DNA of 61,122 nt, filler included, from Platydemus manokwari (taxonomy: Eukaryota): assembly GCA_037951405.1 (NCBI GenBank). It is 5 parts of 5 records of this genome, joined end to end, with 100 filler letters (N's around TTAATTAATTAA, not from the genome) between each part and the next. Parts side by side here need not be neighbours in the genome. Positions count along the whole stretch, not along the records: positions 44,569 to 61,122 come from JBBMOY011164768.1; 4 more parts are not named here. The stretch is one strand, 5' to 3'. The notes under the pieces were generated by a model. The model was not told the origin of the DNA. It made no database searches and worked only from the letters and a program-made list of their open reading frames with translations. Shown piece after piece: positions 44,569 to 61,122 of the stretch; positions within the stretch are counted from its first letter, which is position 1, and every line of letters begins with the position of its first letter. The position numbers and the translations under genes are program-made.

Positions 44569-44607
<39 letters not shown>

Positions 44608-44723
44608 TAATAATAATAATAATAATAATAATAATAGTAATAATATGGAATAATCCAATGCAAATGAATTGTTAAATTTAACGTTGGAGAGAAAATTAAA
44701 TGAAAATCTAATTTATATTCGTA

Positions 44724-45169
44724 ATGCTCAAGAACAATACAAGAAAACGCATTGACAAAGCATCATTTATATCAAATATTTGTTCTCACCAAACAATAAA
44801 AGGTATTTCTGGTGTTTGATATTAATTCCGTGATATAAATCCATTAGTAAAACAATGATTTTTTAGGCAAAGATTTATGTTTGAAAGGTTATTGTTTATC
44901 GTGTTATTATTGTTATCTTATAAAAGCTGAAACGGATTTTACAAAACGACAATCTTTTTGTTATGACATTCATACAATTGAGAAGTATATAAATCGCTTT
45001 CAAGTACCTGATAATGAACAGTATATTGATGTTTCTCATTATATTATTATTATCATTATTATTATTTCTTTCTGACGAGATCAAATCTAATTCTCCGCAT
45101 TCAAGTCATAAAACAACTGTAGTGGAGAATGTCAGTGCATTAGATGACTTGTTTGTTTCGAAGAATTAA
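44724..45169 (+). CDS. Putative small Cys-rich protein (~101 aa). Exons 44724-44802, 44867-45003, 45080-45169
   Basis: A GT-AG intron at 44803-44866 joins MLKNN...ICSHQTIK to GKDLCLKGYCLSCYYCYL in frame. The third exon relies on a weaker GAG acceptor. Confidence 0.4.
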
Positions 45170-47510
45170 TATCTTCATAATTGACAATGTATTTTGATAC
45201 AGCAGTTGATCTTTCCTTTCAGTTATATCCAGTGATTAGGAATTCTATTAACATAATATTCATAGATTTTTATGATTATTATCTGAGGTCCTGCTAATGG
45301 GGATGTACAGAATTACATTCTCCAGGAAGATTATCCAGTACGGAGTAATCTCAAATATAATAACCAGTAAATTCTATTTCCCCTTTAATCTGGAAGTGTC
45401 CTTGACACGAAAACAAAACATAATAAATACAAATAACCTTTGATGAGAGATACAAAACAATATCAGAATTTATCAACTCCAACCGCAGCCGCTGTGTGAA
45501 CTCGAATTTCAAATAGGATTTTTTTTCACCACGATAAATTAAATTTCTCGCCTTGATGTCTCAAAAATTGATTACATCTTTCTTCAATTATATATGGCCG
45601 ACAGAATGTCTGTCAACAGGCGGGATAACAATTTCCAATTACGTTGACTAATTTTAATATACTGATAAATGAATTAATTAATTTCTCGACGTTTTCCTCA
45701 TGATAAACTTCGTATCAGGCAAAAAAACAAGAAAATCCACACAAAAAGAAACAACAGACCTTATCCGTTTGGTTTTTGGTCTATTCGAATGGTGAATTGT
45801 TCATGAAATTACGCGATCATAAAAGTATTTATTAACATAATAATTTATCATTAATTCTTGAAGAATACTTTGTTTTCAATATTGTTTCTGTTTCTCTGTA
45901 GATATTATTATTATTATTTGATTCATTTGTGATGAAGGCATACACAAGCTTTGTTTGCAATGGGAAATATTGATTGGGAAGAAATGTTCTCATCAAAAAC
46001 TATTTGATGGTGGTGTTGAAAACGATTGCAAATATTTGATTTTGTTTCTTTTCTATTTTGTGAAAACATATTTTTATTTTGTTTTTCAAATTTAGATTTT
46101 GGTTTAATTTTAAATATTTTAAATTTCATTTTATTTATTATTATTTTTTTAAATTTTTTCTTTTTTATTTTTACTCTGTACATTGTTTATTGTCTTTAAT
46201 TTGACTTTATAGTAATTTTTCTTACCACATTTTACTTTAATTATTTGTGTTTTGAGAATTTGTCTCATATATTTTATTTATAGTATTTGTTTTTTAAGTT
46301 TTTTTAATTTTTTTTAATTTTTTTTAATTTTTTTAAATTTATTCCTCTATTATTCTTTTATAATTATTCTATTATTATTAAATTATAATATTCATATTCA
46401 TAATTTATTATTTTATATTTATTATTAACGCTATTTTTTACAAATTTTAATTAATTTTCATAATTTTTTATCAATAATATTAATATTTTAATCAATGTAA
46501 ATCGATAATAATTTAAATAATTAAATCAATAAATCCCCAGCAAAATCCACACCCACATCAAATCATTTTTCATACAACAAACAAAATATCATTAAATATT
46601 TACAGAATAAATTAAAATGATATCTCGAGGGTAAACAAATCGAATTATTTTTATATGCTTCCATTGATGTTTTTTTTCTGTGTTTTCAATACTAGTGAAA
46701 CAACTGATTTTCACAGTGCTACATACATATACATATATATTCATTTTCATTTTGAAAAAACACATTCAATATATTTATAATTTCTGTTTGGAATTTTTAT
46801 CGCCATGTCAAAACTGTCTATTTATTTATTCTCTATCGATTTCATTCGATAGATAAATGTATAATCGATAATGAATAAAATAGAAACTTTTTTCGGTCAC
46901 AATAAATGTATTCATTTAAACAATTATCTTATCGCACTGGAAACACTCTTTGTGAATTGAAAATCGCAATTAAATACGAGAAAACGATTGAGAATTGATA
47001 ACAGAATCGCTTAAAAATGGTCAATCGATTACAACCCAGTGTAGTTTAGAGGAGTTTCCTGTCAGCTCATCTATAATTAAGAATTATTTTAAAATATTTG
47101 ATATTAATAACGTGATACTGATTTATTTATATCAGTAGTTTTCAACCAGGATTCCCCGGAGCCTTCAAATTCCTATCCTGAGGAGTTGGTTAAATGTTTG
47201 TTGTATAGCATTTTATCACAAAACATTACCAAAGAAAAGCCCATAAAATCCAATCCTAATGTGACTAATATGAAAACCAATTTCAGCTTAATATTATTAT
47301 AAAATCGCCTTTGTCTATTGTAAGGTGCTAATTTCTCCTTAATCTTTATTAATTATGGGAGAAATTATTCGTTACGCGGATTATCTCTGGCATTTCATAA
47401 TTCGGCTTATAAGCAATAGATTTATTCGAAAAACATATTAATGAAACAAAAACAAATCGATATTTTTTAATTTGATAATCGTGCTTGAAATAACCCTAAA
47501 ATGGTGATAT

Positions 47511-50027
47511 CTATTTCGAACAGTATTTCTGTTCTATTGCCTTTTCCATTTTTAGTATAGAATTTTTCATTGATTTCAGTTCGATTTTTCTCTCATAATC
47601 CTCATCTTCTTTGGTCGAAACCAGTTTATGCCGACGATCTTTCAAAGCCAAAGCCTGCAAAACTATGAATGACGTTGATGGGCCGATTTTGGTTTTATTT
47701 TTATCGTTGTCCGTTTGATCATCGTTTTCTTCATCGATTTCCACTGTGATTTGTTTCTTCCGAAGACGAATAATCAATTCAGCAATGATTTCGAAAATAT
47801 TCAAAGGTGGAGGAAGCATTGATCGATCGTAATATTCTTTGATGTCTTTATATCGATTTAATTTCCAGGATTCAGAGGATTTTTGAATGATGGCCGTAAC
47901 TGTATAACTAAATAAAGCAATCAACAAATTCAGGAGCATTATGTTGACAACGATCATAAAAATGATTAACAAAAAAAAAGTTGCTATATTGCCTTGACTG
48001 TTGACGAAATACGGTGTTTCTTGGTGTTCCATTTCTTCCAGAGCGTAATGAGTATGGAAAATCGTGTATGTGGTTCTTTTGAAAATATGACCAATGATCG
48101 ATGGGACGGGGATTCTTTCAAAGCTTTGACTGTAATTCAGACCGTAGAAACTATTGGGATAAAGTAAAGCTTGAAAAGTTATTCCAAACGATATAATGAA
48201 AACGACAAAGATAAATATCAATGGCATCAAATTTCTACCGATCATTATACTGATCATTTTCAATTTTGGTCCCAACTGTTCGAAAATCGATCCAAAATAG
48301 ATAATTCTCATATAGAATAAGATCAAAGACAAACACAAGATCAATCTTATAACAAATAAATAAATACTCTGACTTTCCTTATACAGTCCTTGATCACCTT
48401 CTTGAGAATAGTCCGGCGAGCTTAGGCTCATTCTTAAAATAAATCCAATCAACATAAACCCCAAAGAACCGATATCAACGTAATTTGTGGCATCTTTGAG
48501 ATAGGATTTGAGAAAATCTGTCTCTTGATAAACGTAAATTTGACGAGATTCTTCCAGAAAATATCCCAATCCATAAATATAGCAAAGAATTTCCATTGAG
48601 GATATTTTGGAATAAAAATTATTCACTAAGAAGTAAGAAAACAATAAGAGAAAAATACAATGTACAAACGAATGAAGATAGAATTTAATTGCTGGACATT
48701 TCCTAGTCTTTTTGTACCAAAGTCTAGTTAAAGCCGCTTGACAAGATGGTAAGCTGAGAAATTTCGAACATTTTCCCAAATATGCGATATCGAGAATCCG
48801 TTGTCCGGCTAAAATGTTAGGCTTATTTAAAAAGTTCGAAACGAGCCTCTTCGTTGGTGTAAAATCCCGATAGACTGCCCGACTCATCACTGCCATGGAA
48901 TACGTCTCACAAAATGTTTTCAACTTCTTAATACTTTCTAACACCTGATCAGGAAATTCCGGCACCATCAACAAATTTTGACAAATCAGACATACCAATA
49001 GCCCGTACGAAATGATGTCGAACTGGCAGCAGGCTAACAGTGTCGAGGCCAATTCAAATCGGCCGGTAATTAAAGCCAGGAACAATGATGACCTATAAAA
49101 TTGTACATCATTTTCGTCTTCATAAATTTCGTTATCTTTTATTTTCAAACCTGTCAATTCCGTGAATAGTTTCTCTTGGGCCATGATGGGATATTTTTTG
49201 CAATATTTATTTTTAATATAAGTCAGAATTCCTTGACCGTTCTCATGACAGTTGGAAATGATGTAAGTGAAATCGGCTTGGTTGATGTAGTATTTTTCAC
49301 TAAATTTCGGATCCTTTTTGATATAATTTATGAGTCTGTATTTATTATTCTTCTGTAGCAAACTCAACCAAACTCTTCCGGTGGTAAGTTTATTATTGAA
49401 ACTGAAATCCTCCGTAGCCAACAATCCACGGGATATCTTATCAACATGGATAAGCAATTCATACAAGTTGACTGATTTGTGTCGTTTTATGTCTTTCAGT
49501 TTCATTTTGTTGGTACATGCCAGTTCCAAAGGCGTAACTTCATCATATGATAGGTCAAGGAGTTGATGAGATTCCTTTATTAGGACTTCTAATTCTCCTT
49601 CAACATAAGTTTCTTTCTGACATGCAAGATGTAAAGCCGTATGTTTATTGATATCAGTTGTACCCACATCGATTTCCAATTCGTTCAGCAAAAATTCCAA
49701 GATATCTTTACTTCTGTTGTTCTCAACAGCAACATGGAGCCATGTCTTCTCTTCAGAATCTTTTAAATAATTTTGAACATAAAATTCTAAATTTTTCTTT
49801 ATAAACGTAATCGAATCGATCTTGGTGACTTTGGTGAATATTCTATGCAATAAATAAACATTCTCATCATGACACCATCGCACAGCATTTTCCTTTTCTT
49901 TCTCATTTAATAAGTCCGTGAAAGCAGTGATGTTTAAAGGTAGAAGACCGATGTTTGATTTGAAATTCTCAGAATCGTTAGATTCCACATATTTCTTTAG
50001 TTGCAGTATTGCAAGAATTTCTGCCAT
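47511..50027 (-). CDS. Single-exon TRPM-like cation channel with N-terminal ankyrin repeats (838 aa)
   Basis: Ankyrin motifs TWLHVAVEN, TALHLAC and TPLELAC. MHR4-like LFLALITGRFELA and ILDIAY..FLSLPSCQAALTRLW, then PAIKFY, six hydrophobic segments, QLGPKLKMI and NIMLLNLLIALFSYT. TRP box WKLNRY..IKEY..RSMLPPPL, followed by a C-terminal coiled-coil-like tail. Confidence 0.9.
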   Translation of the reverse strand: MAEILAILQLKKYVESNDSENFKSNIGLLPLNITAFTDLLNEKEKENAVRWCHDENVYLLHRIFTKVTKIDSITFIKKNLEFYVQNYLKDSEEKTWLHVAVENNRSKDILEFLLNELEIDVGTTDINKHTALHLACQKETYVEGELEVLIKESHQLLDLSYDEVTPLELACTNKMKLKDIKRHKSVNLYELLIHVDKISRGLLATEDFSFNNKLTTGRVWLSLLQKNNKYRLINYIKKDPKFSEKYYINQADFTYIISNCHENGQGILTYIKNKYCKKYPIMAQEKLFTELTGLKIKDNEIYEDENDVQFYRSSLFLALITGRFELASTLLACCQFDIISYGLLVCLICQNLLMVPEFPDQVLESIKKLKTFCETYSMAVMSRAVYRDFTPTKRLVSNFLNKPNILAGQRILDIAYLGKCSKFLSLPSCQAALTRLWYKKTRKCPAIKFYLHSFVHCIFLLLFSYFLVNNFYSKISSMEILCYIYGLGYFLEESRQIYVYQETDFLKSYLKDATNYVDIGSLGFMLIGFILRMSLSSPDYSQEGDQGLYKESQSIYLFVIRLILCLSLILFYMRIIYFGSIFEQLGPKLKMISIMIGRNLMPLIFIFVVFIISFGITFQALLYPNSFYGLNYSQSFERIPVPSIIGHIFKRTTYTIFHTHYALEEMEHQETPYFVNSQGNIATFFLLIIFMIVVNIMLLNLLIALFSYTVTAIIQKSSESWKLNRYKDIKEYYDRSMLPPPLNIFEIIAELIIRLRKKQITVEIDEENDDQTDNDKNKTKIGPSTSFIVLQALALKDRRHKLVSTKEDEDYERKIELKSMKNSILKMEKAIEQKYCSK

Positions 50028-52119
50028 ATTAGAAGTGAATCATCTCATTTAAAATTTTTCAAATATATATTTATATACATAATTGATATCTAACACCAAA
50101 ATTTCACACACTACTACAATAACACACAATCTTAATGCCAATCAATACGTTTTTTATCACTGCATCCATAATATGAATCTTTGAGAATGATTTCATCAAT
50201 CACCAGCTAACTAAATGTCCATTTATTAAATTCAGTGATTTTATTCGTTACCGATAATGGTGTTCTTTGAATGCAACGCGATATGAGAAACCTATTTATT
50301 TAAACAACTCATTGTATAATTCTCGAAGATATTATCTAAATTAATACCAAACTAGTAGATAAAATATGATATTGATTTGAGTATAAGAATTTTATATCCC
50401 AGAAGTATCATTAGAAAGAGTTAGACTTTGAAATCGTGCAATTCTATGGTGAGGAATTTTACTTCATGAAGCATAGAATAATGATGAATATTAAACTTTT
50501 TCGTTAGAAAATGAGACCTGGATTATAGTTAGGCCAAAATGAAAATGTTTCTTCAACAACAAGAATAAAATAATTAAATTTCCTTGGTATTCCACATATA
50601 TACGGAAAACAAGTCTATAAGTTGTTAAGATTGTTGTCAGCATTTTTTATAGAAGAACACTAGTAGTATTATGCTGAATTATCGTCGTGATCTTGAACTG
50701 AAATTTAATGATAGGAGATATTTCCACATATATTTTATAATTACCGTATTATATTTATGAAATCAGTATCGATAAAATCTCGAGACCATATTACCTCGAA
50801 TATTATAAATTACTCCAATGCACCGGCTTCAATAACTGTGGTCTCCATGATCTTACTCTTTTGTGCGCACTATTATTGAATGAATGAAGCTTTCACATAA
50901 CAATAATAATAACTGAGAAGATTGGAGAAAGTTTTGTCTAAAATCAATAACTCTTATCATACAGCAATGTATTAGATCAGAAAATAAAGTGATGAACATG
51001 GAAGATGTGTTATTGATTGCCTTTATAACTCAATTTAAGTTCTCTGTCAAATACCAATTGTCATTTCCAACAGAAACTTTTGTCGCACGAGAAATCTGAC
51101 GAAACGAAATCCAAAATTGTGTTTGATTCTTTTCATTTGAACTTTGTATAAGTTTTTATAAAGATCAAATTTGATTGAAAAATCAAGGCAATTTAATACT
51201 TCATGAGTATCAAGCAGTTCTACTGTGGTTTGTGTTTTATTTCAGTTTTCATTCAACATTGAATGGTCTTGTCAATTCAGTCATCGCATCACCTCCATTA
51301 TCTAGAATGAAGATGTCATTTGTATAGAAAAACATTGACAATTAAAACAAATAAATAGTATTGATTGAATGAATCAATTATTTATGAGTTAAAAATAGAA
51401 CAAATCAATAAGTTCATTAAAATTTATTAATAGTTGGAGATTAATATTATTTGATAAATAAATAAATCTTATATTAATAAAAAAATAATCTGATCAACAA
51501 TTTTGTGCCTTTTTGAACTCTAGCTGGTTTGTATTATGAGCTATAATTTACATATAATATGGGTTCTTTGTTGTAGAAGACCAAGCATGAAAAGGAATAA
51601 AAAATGTACAATTTCAGTGGCAAAACTAAGGATGAGTTTCAAAACTAGTACAAAATACCATAAAGTTTGAAAGTCTTGACGATACAATAGAAGAGATCAA
51701 AATAAATGTTGTCATGGTTGATAGGCAAGTATAAAAAATAAGTTCTTATAACGCAACATCGCTAAATAATATAATAGCGTTTAAAATTTTTCAGTTGGAT
51801 AAAGTTAAGAAAATACGAATCTGTACAATTCCTCAAAAAGTCACTGAACTTGTTCAATATATAATAATATATCAATGATACAATAGCAAGTGTGGCGATA
51901 GGAAAACATCAAGGTTGGGACTAGATGTACAGAATCTAGTCCAGAAAGAAGAAGCAGATAGGTGAATTATTTCCTGAAAGATGTGGATAATTATCCAGTG
52001 ATGGTTTCTAACATACATTTAAAGTAAACATCATTATTATCGTCCAAATCATTTTTATCATTATCAAGCTGGAAGAACTTTGATTGGGAAAGAATAATAA
52101 AACAAATAAAAAAAACAAT

Positions 52120-52300
52120 CATAACCATGGAAAGCTATAAGGTGGACCGCATAAGCTCTTTCGTAAAGAGAGATCCAGAAGATCCTGATAACTTAGTGTA
52201 TACGCCAGAATTCTTGGAAGAGTGGGCCAAGTAACTGGACTATTCGTCCGAAAAAAATAAATAAAAGTATTTGTACAAAAGTTTAATTGGTGGTATGTGT
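52120..52300 (+). mobile_element. Possible retrotransposon gag remnant
   Basis: Disrupted frame MESYKVDRISSFVKRDPEDPDNLVYTPEFLEEWAK*LDY...KYLYKSLIGG loosely resembles Gypsy gag N-termini. Confidence 0.25.
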
Positions 52301-55300
52301 GAAACTGTTTTACAAATAGATATTTTAACTACAAATAGTATAAAATGAATATAAAAAATTGTATCTGTAAATCTGTATAAGTATAAACAGAAAAAATTGA
52401 TCTTCATTTTATCATATAATTATCTTACGATAAGAAATACAAAAAAGATTTTTTTATTATAAGAAAAAATTAAGAAATGCTAGACTGTCTACATCAATTC
52501 GGAAACTAAAATAGAACTTAAAAATCACGATCAACTAGTCTTTTAACGAACCAAAATTAGTCAGTGTCGATTCGTGAAATAGTTTGCTCCAGGCAGAAGA
52601 AACCACAAAATTCAAATTAACGTCTGCTAGCAAATTACGAAGGTAAATATTGTACATGGCAATCAGAAATTGAACGCTTCTGAGGTGTAATATTTTAAAA
52701 TCAAATTAAAGTAAGATTTGTTAATCATATGTGGTCAATCTGATAGATGTGTTGTCGACATTTCATAAAGTCTTTTGTCTGAGATAAAATTCTTGATGAT
52801 TTTTAAAGAGGTTGATTGTCAGTTAATAATTTCTTTTTAGTGATGAAAAAATTAAGAAAATAATATTTATTATTAAATTGAGCTGAATTTTCCCATTACC
52901 ACCATCATACGAGGACTGAATAAGAAAGACCCGAATATATACTGCTGGAGTACTCAGCATCGATCACTTTGAATTTAGAATAAATAAATTTAACATTTCT
53001 ACATGTGTCCTCATATAATATTTTATAAATATTTGTAGTAGTCTGAGATTAATGTATTATTTAATAAACATGTCTATATTGTGCTTGTAAACAAGATATA
53101 AAGTAGAATTATTATTTAATTAGACTGTAAAATAAAAAATTTTGCGTGTACATAGGATGTTAAAGTTTTTATACTGTATAATTATTCATTATAAGAACCC
53201 AGAAATACTTCACAATGAAATACAATCTCTAAAGATGACTTATTTATAAAAATCGGAATGTTAACACAACCCGTTATACATGTTTTCAAATATTTCCTAA
53301 AGAATCTAAATATATTGGACAAATAATCATTTATTATAAAACTGTATCGAATGTAATTTTACTATAAATAATTTTTATGATCCAATAGTATATTTTTTAT
53401 AAATTTTTGTTTTAAATATCGTTTAATAATATTGATTTTTTTGCTTTATAATGTAGTTTTTATTGCAGTAATAATTTCTTCATACATTTGTTAAAAAATG
53501 TTGATTTTCAAAATTAAAATTCTAGATATATAGATGCATAAAAACTGAAAACAGATCGATTCAACTTTATTAAAATACTTATATTTCAGAAAATATGAAC
53601 AAAAATCGATAGGTATTGTAACCCTTTTAAAGGAGAATCGATATTTCGTAGATCGAAAGAGTTTTTAAATGATTATTCTCTTACCCATTTGGAGTGTCTG
53701 GTCTGACTTAAAATATAGATTCGTTGTTTTTCTCAATTTGAATTTATCTTATTGAGTTTTTGATTTCTTTTCGATTAATGATTTTGAAAAATCATGCAAA
53801 AAAAAGAATAATAGTTGTAAAACGTGCACTAACTAAATCCTACTCATTAAGATTAATTTATTCATAACTTTTTGGATCAATATTTGTAAACTGACATTTG
53901 ATTTTTATGCGGTAATTTTCATCCAAATAATTTTATAACTACTGTAATGTGCTGGGAGTCGAATTACAGATATAAAAAATATGATATTTAACATTGTGAA
54001 GGGAATGGTGAGAAGATATTTATTTAAGAGAGTTATAGGCTTAACTAGTACATATATTACCGATTTATTGAAATTAAATACATTCACACTAATAAATAAA
54101 TAGAGAAAAGATTGTTTAAAATAAAATTATTTCTCTCACTGTTAGAAGTGCTTCACTTGAATATATTAGTCACAAGTGGTCTTGACAGGCATTTAAATTC
54201 GTTAATTAATTCCGATTTCAAAATATTTACCAAATTATAAGCTTCAAATTAATAAAATATAAATTTCTTGCAGAATTTTCATTAAATAATAATTTATTTT
54301 TAATTGCACCAAATATTGAAGAAAAACAAAACTAAAAATATCATCAATATAGAAAACGGTTTTGTTTTGAAGCATAGTTATTAAATTAAAGGCTATGATT
54401 AAAGATAATTGAAAAACATAATTAATCAAATATTATTGCCTACTAAATGGCCAGTTAATTTATGATAAAGAAAAACTTTTGCTACTTCGAAAATCTTGTA
54501 AATAGAGGGACTAACACAAGATAATGATTGAAATTCGAACTGAGAGTACCCCTGATTAAATTTCTAGAAAAAGACTAATATGAATTTTGTTATAAATAGT
54601 GCAAAATTTCGCCTGCACAAAACTAAAGATTAACAAGTAGAAGCAGTTTTTTAATGAATGCCGGGGAAAAAAATTACGAAAAAAAGTAACATTACATGTA
54701 TGCATCAGAGCAAAATATTTTAAAATGCTGAATAACCTTCTGTCTAAGTCAAAGTGTTTTGTATCTTTAATTTTGTAACTTTCTGAGTTGATTAATGTAT
54801 ATATTAATGATTAATGTATATCTAATCATTACGGCCAATGGAGTCAGATTACTAGATTTGGTTATATACCGATGTATCAATAATTAACGGGGTTTTGTAA
54901 GTTTTTAATTAATTTATTGATTTCTTTAGAATTGGAGGCCAAATTGAATCACTTCACTTTTAACATACGACAAGTACAAAACTATAAAAGTAGTCGAATA
55001 GTACTAATATTAAAACTTCTCATTGTTAACGAGCAAACTAGTATTCATAGCACGACAATTTTTAGTATAAACGCATAATCCTCCTTAAAACACGAATCAC
55101 TTCACTTTGAAACAATTTGGTTAATTTTTCTGTCAACGCTAAGTAATATTGTTGCCGAAAATTAATAAAATGTACAGAAAACATTGAAAACAATATTCAA
55201 TGATTAATTAAAATACTTTTACATATTTTCTCTTTTATTGTAATCAACTGGTATTTTAAATGTGTTTTATTTATTTTCACTTTCAATTAATCATTATATT

Positions 55301-56254
55301 AATTTTCTTATACAGTATTCCTCTACCCAACCGTCAATTCCAAATGGATGATACAAAAATAAAAAGTTCATTTGATTGTTTTTTATTATTTTTCTTATAA
55401 AAAAATTCCCCTTAACCGCCACAATTTTCCAATTCCCAAAAAGTAGCAGCTAGGAGGAGTACGGCAATATTAGAACTCAGTTGTCGACCTTATTGTCAAC
55501 AGTGAGCAATTATCAAACCACTCAAACTCAACAATTCAAATCAAATGTATATTAATATTTCTTGAAAATGAAATTGGTCACACATGATTGCCAATTTATC
55601 TTGTCAAACAATTTATGCTTTCAAGCTCCTCTAATATTTGATCCTCTGATTAATACAAACAACAATTTGTCTTATAATTCACTAATTAATTAATCCATTA
55701 AATGCAAAATTCCACATCGTGGCACATTTATATGGCTTAGAAATGACAACCTATTTGGCCATTATCCTAGAATAATGACGTTGCTTCCAATCACAAATAT
55801 AATCAAGCTAAAATTAAACCTTTCTAATAACTGTATAAATTGTGTGGAAATAAATATTTTTTCAAAAATAAACTCCATCTTTTATAGCACCTGACTGAAC
55901 ATGGATAAAAATAAGAAATAATCAATGAAAAACGCTAATGTCAATATTCGGTGATCATATTCCATCATGATGAGTAAATGCTATGAAAGTGACATCAAAA
56001 CCAGTCATGCGGAACAACAATTTCCATCCAATCAATACCTTTAAATCAACGAATTATCGAATAATTCAAAAACAACCTTTGCTATAACTTATCCAATAAT
56101 CAATACCAGATTTCTAAACCCGATATTTAGAAATTTTCATTGAAAAAAAAAATTCAAAACCAAGTCAACTAGGCTAATATAGAATATTTGAAAATCAACT
56201 CCAAGCACGATTATCGCATACATATATATATATCGATAATCTGACATCATTTTT

Positions 56255-57392
56255 TTATGGCTTATACTCATTCAACAGATGATTCGAGAATTGTGTTACC
56301 TTATCAACGCCTCGAACCTCATATTCCAATAAAGGCATCTTTATAACGTGCATATCATCATACAAATCTTCGATTTCTGACAGATATTTGTTTTGGATCT
56401 TTGTTCGAGAGGCACACATCGAACAGTGGGAATTTTTGTCGGGAAACAATAATTGGTTCACCACAACATGGTTGACATGGATATTCTGAACATGGAGCTC
56501 TTGTACCAATCGTTCCGTTTCATAAAGACTCAAAAATTCCGGAATACAAACACACACAAAAGTCGTTTGGTGAGGATTTTTGAATTGGTCGGTGATCTTT
56601 TTTACCAGGGGCATTTTTTCTTCCAACAAACGTGTGGCTTCATTTTTCTGATCTCCAAGACCGAGCCAACCACAGAGTTGGTTCAATATCGGTCCGAACT
56701 GTGCAAAAAGTATTTTAAAAAGTATATTCAAATTGAAATAGTCGAAAAACTATTATTTAAAAGAGAAAAGATTAGAAGAAAATTCCAACCTGATTCTTTA
56801 AACCGAGAACTTTACCAAGGCTTTTTTCCATCATTTCGGGAAATGCTAACAATCGTAAAGTATGGCCAGTGGGTGCAGTGTCAAAAACAACGACAGAATA
56901 ATCCATACTATCAACTAATCGAAACACTTCTGTATATGATGTGTATTCGTCCATTCCGGGAAAATTATTCAGCAATTCTCCTATTAATTTGCGAAAATTA
57001 GCAGCTTCTGCTTGTTCGTTTTCACCTAAGCAATTCAATTCCAATTCAGTTAAATTTACAGTTGGATCTATCTCCATAGCATAGAGATTATTGAACCCCT
57101 AACAATTTCATTATGGTTTAAATAATTTAATTTAAAAAGTAATTTAATTTACCTTTATTAAAGTAGGAATTTTACCAACTTTCTGATCGAATGCAGCGGA
57201 AACATTATGAGCTGGATCTGTACTGATTAATAAAACTCGTTCTCTACATTTTGATAACTGAATAGCTAAACTACAACTACAAGTTGTCTTTCCAACACCA
57301 CCTTTCCCACCAACAAATATCCATTTGAGAGACTTTTTGTTTAATAACTCTTCAATGTTAGGAGACATTAAATCATCAGATGTAAATGACAT
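56255..57392 (-). CDS. GET3: GET3/ASNA1 (TRC40) ATPase, 330 aa. Exons 57392-57153, 57098-56790, 56698-56255
   Basis: [64 protein letters not shown] and CxxC. Two phase-0 GT-AG introns give an open 993-nt frame. Confidence 0.97.
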
Positions 57393-59289
57393 GATTATAA
57401 TACGTACACTAAGTAATTTAAAGAAATAATCGAATTAATTACACAAATAATTACATAATAGAATAAACAAACAAAAACTATTTGTTTGAAAATTTTATAT
57501 AACGATAACATTTTAATTTACATTTTAAATTATGAAAGTAACAGTTAGGAATCGCAAATTATGAAAAAAGAGTACTAGGTAAAAAAAATTAAAAGTCTTA
57601 ATTTCAAAACCAAGATAAATTAAAGTGATAGTTGATTTTCAAATAATTTTAGAGAATAAAAAACGGTTAACTTTTTGAAATAATTTTTTTCAATTTCGAC
57701 TAATGTTTTGGAAATCTACAACAAAATATAGTACAAATTTATGAAATTATCATGTATTTATTATTCGAATGATCAAATTGATATGAAATAAGATTTTTGT
57801 ATAAGAGATATTCAAATTCTATAACAAATAAGCTTTACCGAAGATATATTTTATCCTTAATCTTCAAAATAGAAAGAGGAAATTTTCGAGGTAATTCAGA
57901 AATTTTCAAATATCATTAATTACGTGGATGAGATTTGTGCAACACTATCAAAAAGAAAATGATTTCAAAGATTACAAAATATCAGTCAATTAACAAGCAG
58001 CCGTTAAAAAGAAAATCTAGTCAAATAACATTGAAGCTATGAATCTATTAGTAATTATTTTTATTAAAAGTGTTCTTAGATCACAAGATTTATTACATTT
58101 AAAGAGTGAAAAAATTAGTGACAGCACTGAACCCATATCACAAAATATGGTTTAAATATATCATTTTAAACTTTGTACAATACTGTGTAATCCAGGAGAA
58201 AGCGAAGAATATTTGCTTTTTAATCTTTGCAATTCAATAAAAATTATAAAATAATATTATTGTTCTTATTATGTTTGAAACAAAATTAAACCCAATAGAG
58301 ATTATTATAATAGTCGATAAACTATTAGATAAATTTAAACAATTTTTAAAATAAAACATAATTATTTGTATAATTTTCCTATGTAAACCTACAAAGAGTA
58401 TACGTTATCGACTTAAATGATACAAATGATATATTCTATAAGTTTATTGTGCAATTACCGTTTGTTATTAATAAAAATTTTAGTCAATTTACTACAAACA
58501 AAGTAAAGCTTCAAAATGAGTACTTTAGAAAGCTAGTTAGTAAAGTATGGCTCAGGTAGATAACTTCCTTTTTGCTGACATTTTATATAATATAGATTTT
58601 GAATTAATATTATTACAAATTGAATTTCTCTCTTTTACGTTTTAGTCATTTTCGTGATATTTTTACAGTCATAGTTATACACCTTATTTAAATTCCTAAA
58701 GTCACTAACACCAATGACAATGAGCAATGATTTGTGATCTGTATTTAATCAGTCACTAAGGCTTGTCACTATAAATATTTATTATTAAATAACCGTGACA
58801 CAAATTGGCAATAAAATAAGTTAAAAATTGCAGGTTAAATTTAATATTGTATCGAATTTCAAAGCGGACCTTAACGGTTCCTGTATTAAGAATGACGGTT
58901 TATAAGCACCTTCTCGTAAAGCAAAACCAGCAACCTTTCAATACGTTTGAATTAAACTATGTGATAAGAAATAGACGATATAATATTGATCAGTTTTTAT
59001 CCAAATGTATCTTACTGTAGGATCTTCCAGTAAAATACTGGGCATATATGGACTTCTCATCTCCGACACTGAATTATCTTCTTGTGCTATTATTTATTTG
59101 AAAAAATATGTTCTATCCTCGTGTATAACGATTGTGCCTTAACTTACTCTGTGAATTGAGTCTCTAATAATGTGTCCAATATTTTGTCAGTGGTAATAGT
59201 GACTGCTGCGATGAGTCACTCGTAGATATTTCCTATAATTAAATTTAATGTCATGCATTTATCGCTTTTACACGAGAATTTATTTATTG

Positions 59290-59730
59290 CAAAGAGAAAT
59301 TCTCTCTGATTAAATTTAATAGACTGAATATATTATTCACTGCCTTGATTTCTTATGCCCTATAATATGTGTCACTTTATTTGTCAGTGTTATTGCACGA
59401 TAATATATTACATGTTGTTATTTTATGAACTAATTTATTATTTAGGGAATTAAGTATGTTATGGCTAAATGGATTTTACTGATAATATTATTTTAGATAC
59501 TCATAGATTATAATTATTATAAATACTCAATATTATATTTTATAAGTATCATTTCAAACTAATTTTACTAAAGCTTTCTAACAATTGTCAAATCATGAAA
59601 AAACTGATTAAATACAAAATTATTAAATGTGTAATAGGTATTACCATGCATAAAAATACAATTGTCATAAAAATGAGCATACAAAGTTTAGTTTGATTTA
59701 GTTGTTTTGCCAAAACTATACATTTATGAT
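59290..59730 (+). repeat. Unclassified dispersed repeat, copy 2 (of ~970-1400)
   Basis: Colinear diverged match to 970-1400. Confidence 0.7.
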
Positions 59731-59785
59731 TTTTAGATGTCAATTATGTTTTTAAATATTGGTTGCCAGATTTCTTCATTTTTAA

Positions 59786-59856
59786 CACGTTGACGGACAC
59801 TTGCGTCTATAACCGTTAATTTCGAACTTCATTTGTTTCTACTGTCCGTCAATGCG
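59786..59856. mobile_element. 71-bp piggyBac-type MITE
   Basis: TTAA on both sides (59782-59785, 59857-59860) and TIRs cacgttgacggaca / tgtccgtcaatgcg (12 of 14 paired). Confidence 0.75.
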
Positions 59857-60279
59857 TTAATATTCAAATCGAAAGTCATCAAATCAACAGAACAAAAAAT
59901 CTATTCGTCAATACATCAATTTCCAAGCAAATTTTAAATATTAAATTTAAATTTATTTGTAAACAATCCTTAAATTATATAAATTTAAAATTTTCATTTA
60001 TTATCAATTTATTCCCTCTGTTTTCCTTATTTTATTTATTTTTATCTCTTGTTCATTGATTTAATTCTTGTAAATAATAAAATGTGTTTTATAGATTGAT
60101 CTGATTTATAAATAATCACAAGATTGGCAGTTAATCACAAATGGTGCAATGAAATAAATAAATAAAGAAAAAAGTCAAATAATCAAATAATGAGTCTCAC
60201 ATAATAATCACAAAATCAGAATTGTTATTTGAGATTCGAAGTAATTTACTATTTGGCTGGGATATGAAATTCAAAGATT

Positions 60280-60530
60280 TGGATGTTGCTGATCTCAGGT
60301 GTCTAAATCCACCCACCAGCTTTTCTCTTCTCAGGTCTTTCTATGCATTTCTCAGCTCTTTTTCAGACTGGACCACTGTTATCATGTGTATTGGGTCCTT
60401 ATAAGTTCCTGATTTTATATTTGTCAAACTTAGCTTAGTCAGATGTTTTATTGTTTCTGTTTTGGCATTTTTTATCCATTCACAACATGAGCTAATGGTG
60501 ATGGGTATTTTCTCATCTTCGTTTTTCTCA
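60280..60530 (-). pseudogene. Degenerate coding fragment homologous to ~20830-21100
   Basis: Shared nucleotide blocks aaatccac..ccagcttttct, ttttcagactg..ccactg and ttttggca. It has an internal TAG and a frameshift. Confidence 0.55.
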
Positions 60531-61122
60531 TTATCTGAGTGGAACACTCACCAAACCATGATTTTCCAACGATTATTTTAAAATAATAATTTAAATAACA
60601 ATCGTCAATTTAAAAAATTTTCACATATTTGTCAGATAAAATAAATATAAGAATCATTTACAGAATTATTAAACAAGAAATATCATATCAGTTGGAAACA
60701 TTAATAACAAAAATAATGCAAATTCAAATGTTGGGATCATTTATAATAGAAATGTCAATTTAAATATCCATATCCACATCACATGTGGTTCAATTATGTA
60801 ATATGGATTTGAAAGAGTTTGGTTTAGACTGTCGATCTGATCGTTTGGGTCGACTTTGATTTGAATATATTGGTTTGCAAACCGTAACATCATTCACATT
60901 TAGAGAACTCAAAAAATTGATCAATAAAGATACACGGTTTAATATCCTGTTCTTAAAGCTGAGGAAAAGTTAAAATTAATACAATCATTAACCTGAGGTG
61001 AATACAACAAACAATCGTTTACAAATAGCAAAATCATGTGAGAAGAGAAAAGAAATAGTTATGAAAATAATAATTAACGTGATAAAAATTAAGGCCGATG
61101 CCAAAATTTTGGTATTGTAAAT

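Follow-up and report, generated by a model that had tools for sequence, protein, structure and literature searches.

A short ankyrin-bearing channel gene of Platydemus manokwari, predicted to belong to the described flatworm TRPM-like clade

A 61,122-nucleotide stretch of Platydemus manokwari DNA (GenBank assembly GCA_037951405.1; five parts joined end to end, here called the window) carries, at positions 47511 to 50027 of the minus strand, a reading frame in which ankyrin repeats precede a TRP-type channel. The question raised by this locus is whether it represents a new kind of channel or a member of a known family. An earlier note on this DNA had proposed a retro-derived or domain-shuffled flatworm TRP subfamily with possibly novel gating. 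Our analysis indicates that the gene is, in all likelihood, a member of the described flatworm clade of ankyrin-bearing, SLOG-less "TRPM-like" channels, in which it would belong to a short-form branch, with the group around the TRPM_MCLZ orthologues as its sister. Both the ankyrin plus TRPM-type architecture and the intron-poor gene structure have already been published, and this is not a new kind of channel.

The element is a single uninterrupted open reading frame (ORF) of 838 codons, with an ATG start and a TAG stop, and it is the sole long ORF of the 16.5-kb piece on which it lies (positions 44569 to 61122; JBBMOY011164768.1). The chance of 838 stop-free codons at the local base composition is ~1e-28, and the GC content of the third codon position is 37% in the ORF versus 26% in the flanks. 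The start methionine has the same alignment position in two related proteins, P0001 and P0002, and within a third, P0003. The region is very probably an intact gene encoding a cation channel subunit.

47511 to 50027, minus strand: complete coding sequence; ORF with 50% full-length identity to P0001 (826 amino acids) and no frame breaks
50040 to 50042, minus strand: in-frame TGA, five codons 5' of the ATG; it closes the frame, and the open stretch between stops ends at 50039
47421 to 47426, minus strand: AATAAA, a possible polyadenylation signal 85 nucleotides past the stop (weak evidence in AT-rich DNA)

The N-terminal part of the predicted protein consists of ankyrin repeats. Pfam identified Ank_2 at residues 97 to 174 (E value, 1.4e-10; 42 bits, with a cut-off of 27.3). 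In a separate AlphaFold2 (AF2) model of residues 1 to 310, the region that the earlier note had singled out for such a check, the predicted local distance difference test (pLDDT) values were 85 to 95 over residues 1 to 190, and the top Foldseek matches of this model were all ankyrin-repeat proteins (DARPins, ankyrin-R, Shank3, and others) with 150 to 190 aligned columns. About three ankyrin motifs had been counted previously; the ankyrin assignment stands, but the predicted structure contains about five repeats, two to three of which are detected by Pfam.

The remainder of the protein is of the TRPM type. In a phmmer search against the PDB, the best 60 matches were all TRPM channels, and the top one was zebrafish TRPM5 (E value, 1e-26), matched over residues 425 to 762 of the P. 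manokwari protein; the S4-S5 linker LGPK, the TRP box WK..RY, and the LPPP motif can be recognized in this alignment. A weak second HMMER stretch relates residues 314 to 449 to TRPM5 residues 504 to 632, a part of MHR4. The full-length AlphaFold model, built with 48 homologues, had a mean pLDDT of 80.5 and a predicted template modeling score of 0.75. Its best Foldseek matches were also all TRPM, with TRPV6 appearing only at a root mean square deviation of 19 Å. When superposed with VIA-align, model residues 204 to 838 matched TRPM4 (residues 404 to 1168), TRPM7 (417 to 1217), and TRPM3 (434 to 1217) with Z scores of 19 to 20, a range extending from MHR3/4 through S1 to S6 and the TRP helix to the rib and pole at the C-terminus. 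The MHR3/4-like region also matches residues 435 to 705 of a Schistocephalus orthologue of TRPM_MCLZ in tblastn. The N-terminus is thus short, as had been claimed, but the MHR3/4-like part starts near residue 204 and not after ~300 residues. LSDAT/SLOG, NUDIX, and kinase domains were not found in a Pfam scan of the 838-residue protein. In the predicted structure, the ankyrin repeats are N-terminal to MHR3/4 and occupy the place of SLOG/MHR1-2 of the canonical TRPMs, and the previous reading of ankyrin repeats and a TRPM-type channel within one ORF is borne out.

49443 to 50027, minus strand: ankyrin-repeat domain, residues 1 to 195, with about five helix pairs (Pfam Ank_2, AF2, Foldseek)
48708 to 49418, minus strand: MHR3/4-like helical region, residues 204 to 440, ending just before S1 (superposition, tblastn, weak HMMER match)
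47910 to 48695, minus strand: S1-S6 channel domain, residues 445 to 706, holding the ligand-pocket residues L451 to Y577, four of the five Ca2+-site residues (E493, Q496, N515, and D518), the LGPK linker, the pore helix (residues 641 to 657), and the filter region F657-H658-T659-H660 (phmmer, alignment, AlphaFold model)
47748 to 47900, minus strand: TRP helix (WKLNRY, E731, Y732, R735, S736), LPPP motif, and re-entrant helix, residues 710 to 760
47520 to 47681, minus strand: C-terminal helices 783 to 803 and 806 to 836, corresponding to the TRPM rib and pole (coiled coil) (model; alignment to TRPM4 residue 1168)

The canonical TRPMs (TRPM2, TRPM4, TRPM5, TRPM8, and others) share with the P. 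manokwari protein the MHR3/4 fold, S1 to S6, the LGPK, WK..RY, and LPPP motifs, the rib and the coiled-coil pole, and five Ca2+-site residues. The protein departs from them by having ankyrin repeats in front and by lacking SLOG/MHR1-2, a hallmark of canonical TRPMs, as well as NUDT9H, the kinase, and a Gly-Gln or Gly-Glu filter motif; in addition, the stretch leading into S1 is shortened. A six-helix TRP channel preceded by ankyrin repeats is also found in TRPC, TRPV, TRPA, and TRPN, and language-model similarity on overall features pointed to generic ankyrin TRP clusters (TRPC, painless, TRPA, and TRPN) without resolving families. The TRPC-type TRP box is EWKFAR. Membership in TRPC, TRPV, TRPA, or TRPN was ruled out on the basis of the TRP box WKLNRY, the PDB matches (60 of 60 being TRPM), and the TRPM-type C-terminus. 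The soromelastatins (TRPS; ced-11-like) are likewise TRPM relatives with a divergent TRP domain, but they have SLOG and Nudix and no detectable ankyrin repeats (PMC7306681), the reverse of what is seen here, and TRPS membership was also ruled out.

A word-index protein search, in which low-complexity candidates took up the 8000 scored places, returned P0001 (50% identity) as the only full-length relative. An exhaustive profile search added P0002 (818 amino acids, 41% identity) and the fragments P0003 (50%) and P0005 (73.5%), followed by longer proteins. The short forms are 818 to 838 amino acids long and represent at least four lineages with identities of 41 to 55%. The best-scoring long matches contain, according to Pfam, ankyrin repeats, mostly Ion_trans, and in many cases the C-terminal half of the TRPM2-like domain (MHR3/4), and they lack SLOG; five of the six lower-scoring matches scanned with Pfam carry LSDAT_euk and are canonical TRPMs. 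All ankyrin-type matches that bear animal names are from flatworms (Opisthorchis, Schistocephalus, Dicrocoelium, Fasciolopsis, Protopolystoma, and many Macrostomum paralogues), and the sole non-flatworm label among them belongs to a sequence from a bacterial metagenome-assembled genome (MAG).

An ankyrin-bearing channel of this design has been described in Schistosoma mansoni. Sm.TRPM_MCLZ (Smp_333650) is activated by meclonazepam and encoded by three exons, with ankyrin-like repeats forming a long N-terminal domain (Park et al. 2023, PMC10788528), and TRPM_MCLZ was reported to have ankyrin-repeat modules instead of MHR1/2/SLOG (Sprague et al. 2024, PMC11731825). The name "TRPM-like" derives from these N-terminal repeats, and 63 orthologues have been catalogued (Rohr et al. 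2026, PMC12861061). The whole channel domain lies in exon 3, which is present as two alternative copies (3a and 3b) in Opisthorchis, Clonorchis, and Paragonimus (PMC12861061).

Several of our longer matches correspond to this channel. In P0008 from Dicrocoelium, the residues of the ligand pocket (L844, H845, H849, Y882, E886, I910, D911, R961, and Y964) have the published Sm.TRPM_MCLZ numbers plus 18 at every position from S1 through S4. The cestode sequences show precisely the natural variants that have been published, L826F, I892L, D893E, H946F, R1120K, and T1121S, and the Plagiorchiida sequences have Tyr at position 946. The Opisthorchis viverrini models P0004 and P0151 contain two complete channel units in tandem, matching the published exons 3a and 3b, and are likely mis-joined annotations that read through both exons. 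On the basis of the published residues, spacing, and variants and of the two-unit Opisthorchis models, these matches were identified as TRPM_MCLZ orthologues.

Phylogenetic trees placed the P. manokwari protein next to these orthologues. In a quick maximum-likelihood (ML) tree of 128 channel domains, it fell together with P0001 and P0002 into a group of 31 rows, all of them ankyrin-bearing proteins or fragments, and the SLOG proteins were on the opposite side, with the exception of P0109, a rotifer sequence on a long branch. A careful ML tree, comprising 59 rows (LG+C20+F+G4; support given as ultrafast bootstrap/Shimodaira-Hasegawa-like approximate likelihood ratio test) separated an ankyrin side from a SLOG side with support of 100/98, and the P. 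manokwari protein was on the ankyrin side. It formed a group with P0001 and P0002 (100/100). The eight TRPM_MCLZ orthologues clustered together (100/99), were joined by P0006 and P0009 (99/93), and then by the short-form branch to give a group of 13 rows (80/94). The P. manokwari protein is consequently outside both the 100/99 orthologue group and its 99/93 union with P0006 and P0009, and among the named sequences, the TRPM_MCLZ orthologues have the shortest path to it. The novelty claimed in the earlier note does not survive this placement on the ankyrin side of the tree beside the published TRPM_MCLZ clade, an outcome that the note itself had named as contrary to its proposal.

The ligand pocket of the voltage-sensor-like domain is largely retained. 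Nine of the 12 published pocket positions are unchanged (L451, H452, H456, Y489, E493, D518, R574, Y732, and R735), and three are changed: V517 (Ile in TRPM_MCLZ), Y577 (His), and S736 (Thr). The spacing is identical to that of TRPM_MCLZ from S1 through S3, and the signature residues H452, H456, Y489, E493, R574, and Y732 are all present, with the published spacings of 4, 33, 4, and 24 (PMC12861061). The S1 HxxxH pair was found in no other schistosome TRPM (Rohr et al., PMC12861061); in our alignment, most members of the ankyrin-bearing clade have it. The H946Y substitution reduces meclonazepam potency ~15-fold (PMC12861061, Table 1), and because Tyr577 sits at this key S4 position, low meclonazepam sensitivity is predicted for the P. 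manokwari channel.

Residues E493 and Q496 (S2), N515 and D518 (S3), and E731 (TRP helix) align one to one with zebrafish TRPM5 residues E768, Q771, N794, D797, and E994, and titles of PDB entries refer to Q771A and D797A/N as calcium-site mutants. We take these five TRPM5 residues to be the transmembrane Ca2+ site, and the same five presumably also bind Ca2+ in TRPM2, TRPM4, and TRPM8. By this alignment, the TRPM Ca2+-site residues are conserved in the P. manokwari protein, and Ca2+ binding is putative. The Gln, Asn, and Asp of the site are lost in P0002.

The pore differs more strongly. Both pore-loop cysteines, which are present in the TRPM_MCLZ orthologues, Macrostomum proteins, and canonical TRPMs, are absent from the short-form branch. 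The pore helix is followed by Phe-His-Thr-His versus Phe-Glu-Val-Ser in the orthologues, and the position of His658 is occupied by Asp in P0001, Asn in P0002, and Glu in the orthologues. The assignment of the filter residues is tentative because HMMER and MAFFT align this stretch differently, and as the pore is unlike that of the orthologues, the ion selectivity cannot be deduced.

Overall, the protein resembles TRPM_MCLZ in having N-terminal ankyrin repeats for SLOG/MHR1-2, a TRPM-type channel, TRP helix, and C-terminal helices, an intron-poor gene, and the S1 HxxxH pair, S2 Tyr and Glu, S4 Arg, and TRP-helix Tyr and Arg. It differs from TRPM_MCLZ in its length (838 versus ~1300 to 1400 amino acids), in being encoded by one ORF versus three exons, and in having Tyr for the S4 His, no pore-loop cysteine pair, and His658 for Glu. 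Compared to the Schistocephalus orthologue, it lacks ~260 N-terminal residues and ~140 residues between the MHR-like region and S1.

The DNA around the ORF was searched for further exons. With the N-termini of 17 relatives as tblastn queries, nothing was found in the 16.5-kb piece outside the ORF (E values above 0.08), and hidden Markov models (HMMs) for the SLOG, ankyrin, MHR3/4, and channel domains gave no signal in the six frames of positions 50028 to 61122 and 44569 to 47510 (HMM E values above 0.2). A NUDIX-bearing C-terminus used as the query had no match in the piece, and no second channel copy was found there. The absence of SLOG and NUDT9H, stated previously, was therefore seen both in the protein and in the surrounding DNA, and upstream SLOG exons, which the earlier note had reckoned with as a possible refutation, were not found within the 16.5 kb. 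About 6.2 kb upstream of the channel ORF, on the same strand, there is a GET3/ASNA1 (ArsA_ATPase) gene in three colinear pieces, the gaps between which (~66 and ~40 nucleotides) resemble very short introns. This gene bounds the 5' side of the channel gene, and the neighboring gene does have introns; the previous observation that a neighboring gene is split and the channel ORF is not was correct.

57147 to 57392, minus strand: GET3/ASNA1, Pfam profile positions 1 to 61
56775 to 57077, minus strand: GET3/ASNA1, Pfam profile positions 65 to 163
56258 to 56731, minus strand: GET3/ASNA1, Pfam profile positions 160 to 304

The placement of the gene in the described TRPM-like clade, as a short form beside the TRPM_MCLZ group, has to be weighed against several points. 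The gene is known here from its DNA sequence, the trees are unrooted and have no TRPS, TRPC, or TRPN outgroup, and the sister relation to the orthologue group has a bootstrap support of only 80%. TRPM_MCLZ was matched by published residues, spacing, and exon structure and not by aligning Smp_333650 itself. The Pfam TRPM2-like model (PF25508) matches the longer relatives but is below the threshold on the P. manokwari protein, and because of this the MHR3/4 assignment rests on structure and homologues. Finally, the filter region is poorly conserved, with the alignment discrepancy mentioned above. In another reading, the gene is the TRPM_MCLZ orthologue itself, shortened and fast evolving, with no separate paralogous branch. 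Such an identity would agree with the nine retained pocket residues, including the HxxxH pair, with the TRPM_MCLZ orthologues being the closest named sequences by path, and with the lack of another channel copy in the 16.5-kb piece. We nevertheless regard it as unlikely: the at least four short-form lineages at 41 to 55% identity fit a small gene family better, the P. manokwari protein is outside the 99/93 group comprising all neodermatan orthologues with P0006 and P0009, and Phe, which has been reported at the TRP-helix Tyr position in Gyrodactylus (PMC12861061), occurs in none of the short forms in our alignment. A separate paralogous branch can be proposed only tentatively. P0001, P0002, P0003, P0005, and the P. 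manokwari gene may constitute an undescribed short-form paralogous branch whose permeation, sensitivity to pH or metals, and ligand profile could be unlike those of TRPM_MCLZ. In this branch, the ankyrin layer would be truncated, a stretch before S1 and the pore-loop disulfide would be missing, and the filter residue would vary, with His, Asp, or Asn for Glu.

The earlier proposal, a hitherto unknown TRP subfamily that arose by retroposition or by recent domain shuffling and is gated in a novel way, drew on the intronless ORF among split neighboring genes. The two short introns of the GET3 gene, the far shorter N-terminus than in the orthologues, and the unusual pore loop and filter could be added in its favor. 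That the group is a flatworm one has been confirmed by the origin of the animal-named relatives, but the design with ankyrin repeats in place of SLOG is published and is common to the ankyrin-bearing flatworm side of the tree. The intronless state probably reflects the intron-poor trait of the whole clade and is not evidence for retroposition: since TRPM_MCLZ genes have three exons, with the channel in one of them, an intronless copy requires the loss of at most two introns. Inspection by eye showed no A-run past the AATAAA that could be a poly(A) remnant, in an examination that did not extend to target-site duplications. Furthermore, the layout is shared by P0001, P0002, and P0003, which makes any shortening old, and an old retroposition event would leave no trace. 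We consider a new subfamily quite improbable. It is very improbable that the gene model is incomplete and that upstream exons add ankyrin repeats or SLOG. The ~260 additional N-terminal residues of the orthologues, a CAG right after the ATG that is a possible splice acceptor, and the 20 in-frame residues ahead of the aligned methionine in P0003 would be in line with missing exons, but an in-frame TGA lies five codons 5' of the ATG, the position of the start methionine is conserved in four homologues, no ankyrin, SLOG, MHR, or NUDIX signal was detected in any frame of the rest of the piece, and the same strand carries the GET3 gene 6.2 kb upstream. That the copy is not expressed or was silenced recently is scarcely credible, given the intact 838-codon frame, the preservation of all functional motifs, and the related sequence P0005 with 73.5% identity.

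As a member of the TRPM-like clade, the gene product would be expected to form a tetrameric, nonselective cation channel of the TRPM type, the four subunits being joined via the C-terminal helix. The ankyrin domain would make up the bottom cytosolic layer and replace SLOG. The channel may be gated from the S1-S4/TRP cavity by a ligand or a physical cue, and intracellular Ca2+ bound at E493, Q496, N515, D518, and E731 could permit or potentiate gating.

TRPM_MCLZ, a validated anthelmintic target, belongs to the TRPM-like clade, and praziquantel acts on its relative TRPM_PZQ. Known activators of TRPM_MCLZ are (S)-meclonazepam, clonazepam, nimodipine, and FPL-64176. The P. manokwari protein is a compact relative of 838 amino acids that keeps the drug-pocket scaffold and the Ca2+-site residues but differs in its pore and has only a minimal cytosolic domain, and it could serve as a handy construct for structural work and for comparing the roles of the ankyrin layer and SLOG. 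Ankyrin repeats were not found in TRPM or TRPS by Himmel et al. (2020, PMC7306681), who argue that the TRPM/TRPS ancestor was ankyrin-free; the ankyrin/SLOG split bears on this question but is not decisive by itself. The discovery is modest because both features, the architecture and the intron-poor structure, had been published before.

Some further observations were made in the piece and among the relatives. AT-rich simple or short tandem repeats are present in intergenic DNA at positions 44569 to 44645, 46117 to 46532, 51442 to 51491, and 59487 to 59545, and tRNA and Rfam scans of the piece gave no match. In the free-living Macrostomum lignano, the ankyrin TRPM-like group is strongly expanded (P0010 to P0025, P0060, and P0111 to P0116) and comprises at least two deep groups, one of which has many more ankyrin repeats, in proteins of up to 1967 amino acids. 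This expansion is absent from PMC10788528, PMC11731825, and PMC12861061, all of which deal with parasitic flatworms. In P0082 (1781 amino acids), Pfam identified Ank_2 (residues 133 to 219), LSDAT_euk/SLOG (279 to 539), and then the TRPM2-like domain and Ion_trans; this is either a fused gene model or a TRPM with both ankyrin repeats and SLOG. The bacterial label mentioned above is that of P0093/P0195, a 1537-residue protein with many ankyrin repeats and a TRPM-like channel, which is assigned to a "Kangiellaceae bacterium" MAG, where a 5.1-kb contig encodes it. Its neighbors in the trees are the Macrostomum proteins P0060 and P0116, and the DNA is probably eukaryotic and was sorted into a bacterial MAG.

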